A stretch of DNA of 63,674 nucleotides, counting the filler, from Olpidium bornovanus S191 (Eukaryota > Fungi > Olpidiomycota), in NCBI GenBank assembly GCA_017911155.1. It is 28 parts of 28 records of this genome, joined end to end, with 100 filler letters (N's around TTAATTAATTAA, not from the genome) between each part and the next. Parts side by side here need not be neighbours in the genome. Positions count along the whole stretch, not along the records: positions 12,142 to 16,180 come from JAEFCI010007647.1; 27 more parts are not named here. One strand, 5' to 3'. The notes under the pieces were generated by a model. The model saw nothing but the letters and a program-made list of their open reading frames with translations, searched no databases and had not been told where the DNA came from. The position numbers and the translations under genes were made by a program. This document shows, piece after piece, positions 12,142 through 16,280 of this stretch (position 1 is the first letter of the stretch; each line of letters begins with the position of its first letter).

Positions 12142-15100
12142 CATGTCGTGGGTGCCGAACCTCGTCCGCGAACGCGCCCCCGAATCGAGCAGGTACCTGC
12201 CGCTGCAGGACGTCGTCCGGGACCTCGAAGGGAGATGGGTCGTGGGAAACGACGTGGCGTCCGATTTCCTCGATCCCGACCTCGCCTGGAAGTCACTGGC
12301 GGCGGGCGGGAAAGGCGGCAAACCCGTGTTCCTGGAGTTGCACCTCCGGGCGCTCCTGGAATACGGGGGAGAAAAAGGAGCAGGAGGGGGGGGCGAGCAC
12401 GTCCGGACGTTCATGTTCTGCCCGCTTTACGACCTGGAGCCGTTCCAGCGCTCCGGCTCCCCGGCGGGATTTGTCGTGTCCCAACTCGAAGTGTCCAGCG
12501 AGACCACGTTTTTCACCTGGACGGACATGGCGACGGACACCTACCACCTGCGTGACGACGGTGGCAAAACCCTGGTCGAAGACAAATATCGGCAAAGGGC
12601 CGATTTCGAACCGGACAGCCGACATCGGGTCACGTTGAACTTCGAAGACGCGATTACGCACAACCGGTGGCAGGTGGTTTGCACGCCGGCGAAAGGCGTC
12701 ATCCGCGGATACGCGTATCAGGTTGCGGAAGCGGTCGGCGGGGTCGGAATTTCTGCGAGTTTCTGTTTCGCCATTTTCGGAGCGTACCAGATGAAAGTCA
12801 CCAAAACAATGCGAACGGAAGCGAGGAATGCGCTCGCTTTGGTGGATAAGCAGAGAAAAACAATGGCAACTCTCTCCATAATTAGCTCTGCGGTCATCCA
12901 GGCAATTCCAGGCAAGTGCAGAAAGTTTGTCGCCAGGTTGGAACAGGATCTCTGAACTTCGATGGTTTCTTCGCTTGACAGACCCGATTATCACCCTGGA
13001 TTCTAACGGCCGCATCACCGCCGCGAACGGTAAGCGCAGCGCAGCGTGGCAATAAGCGATGTGATGAGAAGCGCCGTTTCGCAGGGCAAAGATCTTTATT
13101 TGAGCGTTGTCGGTTTTGCAGATGTGGCCCTCAGCCTGATTGGGTTACGACAAGCGGACATTGAGCACGGCGTAAACGTGTCGGACATTCTGACAGTTAT
13201 GGACGGATCGAGGGAACCGGGAGGTTCCGGTGACGAGGTTGGATGCTGGATTTCTCGCCAACCGCCTAAACCGGAGGGATCTTCGCAGGTTATAAGGATC
13301 ATTCCAGCGGAGGGCGGCGTAAGGGAGGTCATCGTCATGCGGAGGAACGGCCCCAGCTACTTTGCCGAAGTGACTAGCTCCAGGCCGTCGGAACACGTTG
13401 GCGATTTCCACCAAGTCATCGTTTTAAGAGGTGGCGGGCTCTGCCTTTTGCAAAACCTTGTCTGCGCGCCGAAGAAAAAGTTCGTGACAGCGGTTTTTTT
13501 TCCGTTCCGTCCCTTCTGAATTGGGTTCGTTTCTTTTTTTTTTTTCTTTTATTTTAGACATCTCGGAACAAAAGACGTACGAAGCGTCACTGCGGTCGGC
13601 GAGAGACGAGGCGGAGACCGCGAAGGCGGAAAAAAGCCGTGTGCTGCTCTTCCTGTGCCACGAACTGAGGAACCCGCTGCACGTCCTGAGCGGGGGCGTG
13701 AGCCTGATTCGCGCGCAGAACATGCACCCGGAACTGGTGGACGAGCTGTCGAGCCTGGCGCACGTGGCGAACCTGATGCAGATCATCATCGACGACGCGT
13801 GGAACCTGTCGCTTCTGCAGAAGGAGATTTGCGAGGGGCGCAGGGCGTCGCAGCTGAAATTCGCGCTGAGCCGAACGCGCACGCAGCAGCACGCACGGCA
13901 GTCGGTGAACGTGGTCTCCCTCGTCCGCGAGGCGCTCGCCGTCGTCGGGCCCACCGCCGAGAGGAAGAGGCAGTCGCTGCAGCTGATCACGCGCAAGTCC
14001 GCGACGATCATGCTCGCCGAGTCCGACCTGGCGGTGGAGATGCAGCTGGAGGACATGCAGTTCGCGATGGACGCGCCCAACGTGCGCCAGGCGCTACTCA
14101 AGGTTCTCGAGAGCAGCATCCGGAGCACGGGGCCGGACGGCCAGATCGTGTGCAGGGTCGAGGCGGACGACTCCATCGAATTCCGCCTTTCTACCCTCGG
14201 CCGCGCGTTCGCCTCCATTTCCCCCATCCCAGACTGCAGCTTAGCCACGCTCCTCCAGCTGTCGGTCGAAGACACGAGAGAACCGCCTTCGCAGGAAGCG
14301 CTGGCGTCGCTGTTCGATCCGTTCAGCTCAAACAACTCGTCCCAAGGAGATTCTTTCGAAAACCCCGGGCTAGCCATGGCCCTGGCGAAGTGCATGGTCG
14401 ACGCGATGGGAGGGAACGTCTCCGTCTCCACCGTCGAAAGCGGAAAGACTTCCCAGGGGTTCACCTTCCTCGTGAAGCTGACCATCCCGCTCTGCTCGGT
14501 GCGCTGCCACCGGTGCAACTCGTTCGCCTGCGAGTGCCGGAGTCTGGCGTTCGAAGACGAATCTCAAAAAGCGGCCAAGTCCGCGAGATCGCTCGCCGGA
14601 TTGAAGGCCGACAAGGCAAGGGCGATTCCCGCGCCTCTTGACTTGACGGGCGAGAAGCCGAAGGACGCTCGCGTGTCGGCAACCGGACCTCAGGCGGCGA
14701 CATCTTCGAACGCGCCGGACGCTTCGGGACCGAGCGCGGCGGCAAGGGAGTCCCCGCGGCCGCCCTCGGCCCTCGGTGATGGCGGGGAAAACGCGCGGCT
14801 TTCGTCGTCGTTATCGCCGGCGATGGTCGATTCGGGAAGCGAGGAGCGGAGGCAAACGCCGTCGTCGTCTCGGAGCGTCTCGTTCGCCGCGGAGTATGGC
14901 GGCGCCGGCCGCGGCATTGACCCCGCCGTTCCGCAAGCCGGCGGGCTTCCGCCAAAAGCCGCCGGTACGTCGGACGGAGGTACGCAAACCGACATGGCTT
15001 CCGGTGGTCCTGGCGGCTATCGGACAAGGGAGCTCCTCGATGACGTTAACGTGCAGGAAAGCTGGGAGGAAAGTCTTGTTGAGGCGGCGGCGGCGCGGAA

Positions 15101-15925
15101 GACACCGTTCGTCCGCCAGAACCAAGCTGACCTGTCGCGGGCCGAGAGCCCGACAAGCGTAGTTTTCCGGCCGCGGACGCCCAGCCGGCAGCTTAATTCT
15201 TCGCCCGACTGGCCAAACCTCAAGCAACCGTTCTCGCCCGACGACACCTCTCATGGGGGGTCTCCGATAACGTCGGGCACCGCGTACACGAACCCGGCGG
15301 CGGCGTCACATGGCGGTGCCCTGCAGATAGTGGACGGGGCTGGTCGAGTCGTCGTCATAGCGGAGGCAAGGCGTGCGGACGAAAGAAGAGGGCGCCCCGG
15401 CTTATCCGGCTTTTGCTCGGCGACTGACCAGAAAACGTGTTCTTCTCTTTTTTATTCGTCATGTTGGCGGGCCGGTTACAGGATAACGGGCTGGTCGCCA
15501 AAATAGCGAAGAAGCAGCTCGAGCGGCACGGGTACTCCGCCCTGCTGGCGGCGAACGGCAAAGAGGCGGTGAACGTGGTGAAGCAGCGCGCCACGAAGAA
15601 GACTTCCGAGCGCGACCGGACCGCCGCCTCAGCGCCCCCAAGTCTTGACGTGCCGATTTCGTGCATCACGATGGACATACAGATGCCGGAACTTGACGGG
15701 ATCGAGGCGACCAAGCAGATCAGGGTATTGGGATACGACGGCCCGATAATCGCCGTTACCGCAAACGCACTGCAGTCGGAACGAGACAAGTGCTTCGAGG
15801 CAGGCATGACGGCGTTCATATCGAAGCCCCTCAAGGAGGCAGCACTTTTGGAAATCGTCGCCCGGCACATCGCCGACTTCGAGGCAAACAATCCGGGACC
15901 GGCCGCCGGCCAGGAAAGCAGCTGA
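12142..15925 (+). CDS. Hybrid histidine kinase: CHASE-like sensor, TM, PAS, HisKA, degenerate HATPase, receiver; 5'-partial
   Basis: Exons <12142-12911, 12982-13029, 13122-13430, 13558-15365, 15482-15925 splice in frame. PAS AIPDPIITLDSNGRITAAN...RDISEQK; H-box FLCHELRNPLH; receiver IAEDN...TMDIQMP...AVTA...SKP. Confidence 0.92.
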
Positions 15926-16280
15926 ACAATTTTCGTGTTCAATTTCGTATTCCGGTAATACCGTATACCTTCCGTGAACGAATAGAGCAGTCTTGTGGAC
16001 GAAGCCTCTCCGATTTAGTCGTTCGCCCTGTCCTCCTGCGGTGAAATTGAGATTGTACGCCAGGACGGTAACCGATTTCGCCTAGATAATTCACGACGCT
16101 GACTTCCCCTGTCATAACGGAAACCCTCCATCGTAATTCCTCTTCCGTCCGTATGGAAAAGACTTTGGCATTCACTGCCCNNNNNNNNNNNNNNNNNNNN
16201 NNNNNNNNNNNNNNNNNNNNNNNNTTAATTAATTAANNNNNNNNNNNNNNNNNNNNNNNNNNNNNNNNNNNNNNNNNNNN

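Follow-up and report, generated by a model that had tools for sequence, protein, structure and literature searches.

A probable remote CHASE homolog as the sensor region of a spliced hybrid histidine kinase gene with degenerate ATP-binding boxes

Histidine kinases with a CHASE domain are the cytokinin receptors of plants, and their occurrence has served as an argument that plant hormones are sensed by microbes. Does the sensor kinase gene at positions 12142–16180 of the window, a stretch of 63,674 nucleotides from the Olpidium bornovanus S191 assembly GCA_017911155.1 in which these positions come from record JAEFCI010007647.1, encode a receptor of this type, and what would such a receptor do? 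A preliminary description of this DNA had proposed a CHASE pattern upstream of a membrane segment. The best-supported reading, drawn from profile alignment, protein-language-model neighbors, and domain architecture, is a hybrid histidine kinase whose ectodomain resembles CHASE as a remote homolog would. Judged from its sequence, the region encoded at 12143–12721 is probably a remote CHASE homolog with a deletion of ~36 residues, not a Pfam-level member of the family.

The piece carries one plus-strand gene of five exons whose 5′ part is cut off at the edge. Frame-by-frame reading places the start of the frame at 12143, and every peptide quoted in the preliminary description occurs in it: RYLPLQDVV at residues 17–25, GNDVASDF at 35–42, AWKSLAAGGKGGKPVF at 48–63, TFMFCPLY at 89–96, and AGFVVSQLEV at 108–117, with the hydrophobic stretch VGGVGISASFCFAIFGAY at 198–215. 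What had been read as one continuous protein is indeed one gene, but it is interrupted by four introns. Protein searches were run exon by exon. CHASE belongs to the Cache superfamily and, as in AHK4 and PcrK, consists of a long stalk helix and two PAS-like modules. The sensor region would correspond to the last ~195 residues of a CHASE-type ligand-binding domain that has diverged very far, and since a kinase has to be in the cytosol, the 193 residues ahead of the membrane helix would have to lie outside it.

A CHASE reference set was assembled by scanning bacterial and archaeal genomes with a 29-nucleotide degenerate DNA pattern for the motif [ED]-Y-x-P-V-x-Y-x-E-P. The pattern is highly specific for CHASE, as 90 of the 108 open reading frames (ORFs) that carry it (loci L001–L120) form one family, CHASE proteins from many phyla. 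We aligned 76 windows of 300 residues each into a profile, A1. All 76 windows match Pfam CHASE (PF03924; best E = 1.6e-67), and the profile matches sensors in the PDB, namely Xanthomonas PcrK (6k62, 2e-33) and Arabidopsis AHK4 (3t4j, 8e-22).

Alignment of A1 with exon A by hhalign gave a score of 29.3 (P = 0.0013) over 177 colinear columns (profile positions 134–322, residues 12–202), ending at the membrane helix and following the register proposed in the preliminary description. This colinear match beats its shuffled controls: none of 400 sequences in which the ectodomain was shuffled and the membrane helix kept reached the score (best, 28.9). With all filters off (hmmsearch --max), the same profile scored 4.4 bits (P = 0.001), a value reached by 5 of 5000 shuffles. 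MAFFT, working without profile logic, returned the same register as hhalign; it matched the opening S-W-V-P-N-L to the conserved E-W-x-P-R-V strand, after which it opened a gap of ~36 columns.

In the MAFFT alignment, Y18, P20, and G35 fall in invariant columns and W3, P5, P94, G109, and W176 in conserved (≥84%) columns, and 17 of 51 conserved CHASE columns are identical in the ectodomain. All four near-invariant columns that the search pattern does not select (G35, P94, G109, and W176) are conserved. The hallmarks W-x-P, Y-x-P, G-x-D-x-x-S, P-x-Y, G-F, and W..5..P would thus be retained in canonical order, represented by W3, P5, Y18, P20, G35, D37, S40, P94, Y96, G109, F110, W176, and P182, whereas neither the A-R-D motif nor, in the signature, the Y-x-E-P half survives. 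Trp176 stands 18 residues before the membrane helix; the median in the CHASE set is 16, and the W..5..P element of bacterial CHASE domains lies 14–21 residues (10–90% range) before their second membrane helix. Taken at the sequence level, the resemblance to CHASE appears to exceed chance, though modestly. Loss of ~36 residues after the first strand, together with gain of a Gly-rich loop, would place the domain below Pfam detection.

Protein-language-model searches point the same way. For whole exon A, a CHASE cluster ranked third (0.89), after two unnamed clusters, one of them mostly diatom. When residues 1–197 were compared with named clusters only, CHASE accounted for 25 of the 30 best (0.97, 0.94, and 0.94 at the top), and the best dCache cluster reached 0.86. 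A high score arising by chance is not expected to land on a family named beforehand. The preliminary description had also suggested modeling the region against the AHK4 sensor. For an AlphaFold2 (AF2) model built with the CHASE alignment (predicted local distance difference test score, pLDDT, 71.7), the best PDB matches are AHK4 and PcrK, but the model is circular and carries no weight beyond compatibility with the fold.

Several results weigh against a CHASE homolog. The Pfam check that the preliminary description had called for was negative: exon A and four sub-fragments of it match no family at E ≤ 10, including CHASE (PF03924; gathering threshold, 25 bits). Among 1.84 billion representatives searched exhaustively with phmmer, the 197-residue region has no true relative. 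The hhalign score drops to 22.3 when residues 1–197 are used alone, and the 4.4 bits obtained with HMMER are reached by 0.8% of real ORF windows from outside CHASE (6 of 762). A P value of ~1e-3 is meaningful only because a single, pre-stated family was tested, and it would not be significant across all of Pfam; nor is the test fully independent, as the choice of CHASE came from that very sequence signal. Taken by itself, the distal half favors a different register, with FCPLYDLEP on the EYxPVxYxEP motif (P = 0.018), and the original register is reproduced by the proximal half only (P = 0.01). From the single sequence, AF2 gave an unusable model (pLDDT 35.8), and the model built with the CHASE alignment superposes poorly on AHK4 (template modeling score, 0.28). 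Finally, two parts of a CHASE protein, its first membrane helix and its long N-terminal helix, fall outside 12142–16180.

Read together, the missing Pfam match and relatives, the marginal HMMER score, the competing register for the P-L-Y/E-P motif, and the unusable single-sequence fold would suit a lineage-specific sensor, from another Cache or PAS-like family or of unrelated fold, whose CHASE motifs match by chance. We regard this as unlikely, although it is the most serious of the rival explanations. Chance matches would have to account for one register over 177 columns from three alignment methods, for the conservation of every hallmark that the search pattern had not selected, for language-model neighbors that are specifically CHASE and well above dCache, and for a spacing to the membrane helix that fits CHASE. 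The segment FCPLYDLEP (12416–12442, residues 92–100) resembles both the CHASE signature Y-F-P-V-x-Y-x-E-P and the later P-V-Y motif, and this double resemblance is why a second, lower-scoring alignment register exists.

Other searches with exon A returned no match: phmmer against the PDB, two word-index protein searches even at E ≤ 10, and tblastn against plasmids. The 11 matches listed by the exhaustive phmmer search, all PKD-repeat proteins, were rejected as spurious, being confined to the membrane stretch and matched many times over. The stretch at 12680–12830 (residues 180–230; GYAYQVAEAVGGVGISASFCFAIFGAYQMKVT) resembles the PKD-repeat motif GxGxTASHTYxxxGxY, and such false matches reach E = 5e-11, a trap for automated annotation. 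Scans for the 5′ part or for close relatives, one by protein pattern in metagenomes and one by exact 27-mer, found nothing, and exact-product look-ups for three ORFs gave no record.

The truncated 5′ end leaves room for a different view of the topology. The first complete in-frame codon, 1 nucleotide from the edge (12142–12145), is ATG, which a random cut in a coding region would give only ~2% of the time. Were it the real start, the first membrane helix would be missing, and the 197 residues would then differ from a classical extracellular CHASE domain, which two helices flank. In pattern-carrying CHASE proteins the first membrane helix ends at a very constant 105–114 residues before the motif, and the motif tyrosine is Tyr18 here, so ~115 codons would be needed upstream, or ~85 allowing for the 36-residue deletion. 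The 3167-nucleotide transcript contig from public run X1 extends only 231 nucleotides (77 codons) upstream of 12142, short of a canonical CHASE start and membrane helix, and this too speaks for a start at 12143. Logan contigs, however, are often incomplete at the 5′ end, and a contig ending exactly 1 nucleotide before a start codon has a very low prior. The alignment begins in mid-CHASE, at the conserved W-x-P strand, so that homologous sequence is expected upstream. With the kinase cytosolic and a Lys/Arg-rich stretch after the helix, the N-terminal 197 residues must moreover cross the membrane, for which a signal or anchor is normally needed. The ATG at 12143 could be an internal Met codon or, less likely, the true start; we consider the latter, and the topology that would follow from it, quite improbable.

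Downstream of the membrane helix, the preliminary description had listed PAS, HisKA, and receiver domains. HisKA and the receiver are present, the former just below its gathering cutoff in exon D (24.1 bits against 26.9), but PAS was not confirmed on exon C alone. The segment FLCHELRNPLH aligns with the H-box of 11 kinases, and the translation of the receiver contains the acidic pair ED, the phospho-acceptor Asp (D65), Thr, and Lys, so the protein has the makeup of a hybrid histidine kinase. Exon C by itself has no match in Pfam at E ≤ 10, no relevant match in the PDB, and no signal against a small six-sequence PAS profile (−0.8 bits). Its position before the dimerization and histidine phosphotransfer (DHp) helix and a DISEQK junction motif, common to exon C and the PAS-kinase P0020, suggest a PAS-like segment. 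Among the 11 nearest kinases by kinase core, none has a CHASE domain; the nearest kinases, aphelid and metagenome proteins, differ in having unrelated N-termini. A kinase-core search of plasmids gave 230 matches, none annotated as CHASE.

The catalytic domain differs from that of an ordinary histidine kinase in a way that the preliminary description had missed. Pfam still recognizes the HATPase_c fold, yet in an alignment with the 11 nearest kinases (24–27% identity) none of the N, G1 (DxGxG), and G2 (GxGxG) boxes is intact. The N box reads KVLESSIRST in place of NLLSNAIKFT, with both Asn replaced (by K and S); the G1 box reads DTREPP in place of DTGIGI, with its glycines replaced; and the G2 box reads ENPGLAMA in place of GGTGLGLA, with two of three glycines replaced. 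Replacement of the N-box Asn and of the G1 and G2 glycines means that the protein probably binds ATP poorly and may not work as an autokinase in the manner of AHK4. The degenerate boxes, combined with an intact H-box His and receiver Asp, suggest a pseudokinase-like hybrid kinase, and this combination makes it more likely that the protein drains or relays phosphate than that it autophosphorylates. Plant subfamily-2 ethylene receptors and phytochromes have likewise kept the histidine-kinase fold and lost ATP-binding or catalytic residues. The present kinase has another type of sensor and, unlike them, still has its phospho-acceptor His along with a complete Asp pocket in the receiver, so that it may retain phosphotransfer or phosphatase activity.

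Could the protein nevertheless be a true cytokinin receptor like AHK4, in which adenine-type cytokinins bind CHASE and switch on autophosphorylation and the phosphorelay? The presence of a CHASE-like domain would allow it, and cytokinin binding is known for PcrK and Nostoc all2875 as well as AHK4 (PMC7700396). We mapped the AHK4 contact residues Asp262, Thr278, Tyr250, Leu284, and Thr286 (PMC3491891) through profile A1, an alignment that is locally of low confidence. Asp262 corresponds to D44, where the bacterial consensus is Arg; it alone of the contacts is kept, in a weakly aligned stretch and beside a 4-residue gap. The wol position, Thr278, corresponds to the bulky Leu62, and Tyr250 to Gly31. 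In AHK4 cytokinin binds to the distal module, the very part that here carries the ~36-residue deletion and a Gly-rich insertion. CHASE ligands are also diverse, that of Dictyostelium DhkA being the peptide SDF-2 (PMC6324907). Adding the degenerate N, G1, and G2 boxes, which make AHK4-like autokinase activity unlikely, and a PAS-like segment that AHK4 lacks, we find a cytokinin receptor of this kind highly improbable. The proposal of a candidate sensor of plant-derived signals accordingly finds no support in these comparisons.

The probable remote CHASE homolog shares several features with Arabidopsis AHK4/CRE1 (3t4j). In both, an ectodomain of CHASE type, a probable one in the present protein, directly precedes a membrane helix, with a histidine kinase and then a receiver downstream, and both have the motifs Y-x-P-[VL], x-D-x-x-S, P-x-Y, and G-[FY] and an Asp at the Asp262 position. 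Apart from the pocket, the distal module, and the ATP-binding boxes, the kinase differs from AHK4 in lacking Pfam-level similarity, in having a PAS-like segment between membrane and kinase, and in carrying a single receiver after a linker of ~290 residues. The bacterial profile, which matches Xanthomonas campestris PcrK (6k62), is what aligns with the region, yet identity to any of the 76 domains is only 11–21%, the signature E-Y-x-P-V-x-Y-x-E-P is reduced to R-Y-x-P-L, and the gene, with its spliceosomal introns, is a eukaryotic one. Proteins that combine CHASE with PAS are common in bacteria, Azospirillum CdgD (PMC7804937) being one. CHASE kinases are known from plants, Dictyostelia, early-diverging fungi, brown algae, diatoms, and bacteria (PMC6324907). 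Compared by description only, those of eukaryotic microbes (DhkA, group XIX of early-diverging fungi, Ectocarpus EsiliHK2, and diatom FsolaHK22–26; Kabbara et al. 2018, PMC6324907) are likewise hybrid histidine kinases of eukaryotes other than plants, with a sensor of CHASE type at the N-terminus; they are recognized by the Pfam or SMART CHASE model, whereas exon A is not. The mostly diatom, unnamed cluster is among the nearest language-model neighbors of exon A.

How such a protein might work can be outlined. Binding of a ligand to the ectodomain would displace the membrane helix and the juxtamembrane helix, and this displacement would change the state of the PAS-like and DHp segments and with it the phosphorylation of the His (13659–13661) and of the receiver Asp (15674–15676). 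In the absence of cytokinin, AHK4 acts as a phosphatase or sink for a histidine-containing phosphotransfer (HPt) protein. The present kinase may do the same under control of its ligand, as the phosphatase of an HPt protein or as a sink for its phosphate; alternatively, a partner kinase may phosphorylate it in trans. The fullest version of this account, in which a CHASE-derived receptor evolved past recognition in a GC-rich lineage, lost ATP binding, became a ligand-gated phosphatase or sink in a His-Asp relay, and is the first CHASE-type receptor noted there, strikes us as speculative and on the whole doubtful.

The features of the gene are collected in Table 1. Contigs from public runs X1 and X6 align with 12142–16180 and skip all four introns exactly, from which it follows that these runs are RNA and that the sensor kinase gene is transcribed and its transcripts are spliced. 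Introns 1 and 4 begin with GC and introns 2 and 3 with GT; intron 4 is kept in one unspliced X1 contig spanning 15337–15509. A 10-nucleotide direct duplication (TCCAGGCAAT, 1.9 copies) at 12897–12915 spans the intron 1 donor and creates two candidate CAG|GCAA sites 10 nucleotides apart, the second of which is used in the transcripts. In the very GC-rich alga Emiliania huxleyi, GC-AG makes up 56% of junctions (PMC4028052), and in pelagophytes 14–17%. The gene resembles these algae in its high share of GC-AG (two of four introns), intron retention, and high G+C content, which is ~62% for the piece. Minus-strand ORFs are present, a usual byproduct of 60–70% G+C. No RNA family or tRNA was found on either strand of 12142–16180, and the repeats there are trivial. 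The runs differ from one another at three positions only (14601 T>G, 14770 C>T, and 14777 T>C), all within the linker that joins kinase and receiver. The receiver contains an insertion of ~25 residues (KQRATKKTSERDRTAASAPPSLDVP) at 15580–15665, before the strand with the phospho-acceptor Asp, and Pfam matches Response_reg in two stretches.

Table 1. Features of the sensor kinase gene, in window coordinates
Feature	Position	Strand	Basis
Exon A	12143–12911	+	
Putative CHASE-like extracytoplasmic sensor region, residues 1–193; N-terminal part beyond the edge	12143–12721	+	Profile, MAFFT, language model
Predicted membrane helix, residues 194–215, then a Lys/Arg-rich stretch	12722–12787	+	Kyte-Doolittle 19-residue window ≥ 1.6 from residue 194
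Juxtamembrane helical linker, end of exon A	12788–12911	+	Helix 220–254 in both AF2 models; exon end from transcript joints
Intron 1, GC..AG, 70 nucleotides	12912–12981	+	Spliced contigs of X1 and X6; frames checked
Exon B, 48 nucleotides, begins PAS-like segment (PIITLDSNGRITAAN)	12982–13029	+	Transcript contigs; too short for search alone
Intron 2, GT..AG, 92 nucleotides	13030–13121	+	Joint in contigs of X1 and X6
Exon C, PAS-like segment, PAS not confirmed	13122–13430	+	Position before DHp helix; DISEQK junction motif
Intron 3, GT..AG, 127 nucleotides, T-rich tract 13530–13555	13431–13557	+	X1 contig joins 13430 to ~13558; tandem-repeat scan
Exon D	13558–15365	+	
HisKA/DHp, phospho-acceptor His codon 13659–13661 in FLCHELRNPLH	13632–13811	+	Pfam HisKA, E = 3.6e-5
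HATPase_c catalytic domain; N, G1, and G2 boxes degenerate	14070–14480	+	Pfam HATPase_c, E = 2e-9
Ser/Pro/Ala/Gly-rich linker, ~290 residues, to end of exon D	14481–15365	+	No Pfam domain
Intron 4, GC..AG, 116 nucleotides, partly retained	15366–15481	+	Spliced contigs of X1 and X6
Exon E (15482–15922), receiver, and stop codon (15923–15925); phospho-acceptor Asp codon 15674–15676	15482–15925	+	Pfam Response_reg, E = 9e-21
3′ untranslated region	15926–16180	+	After stop codon; no RNA family, tRNA, or terminator-like site

Because CHASE kinases are already known in many lineages (PMC6324907), the protein would be a strongly diverged new example and not a new kind of receptor. The CHASE label says little about its ligand, as the cytokinin pocket is not kept here, and its catalytically impaired-looking kinase points to a role as phosphatase or sink. 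CHASE-type sensors can diverge beyond the reach of domain databases, and surveys of eukaryotic histidine kinases may therefore undercount them; should no CHASE receptor be on record for the source lineage, receptors of this type would have a wider known range.

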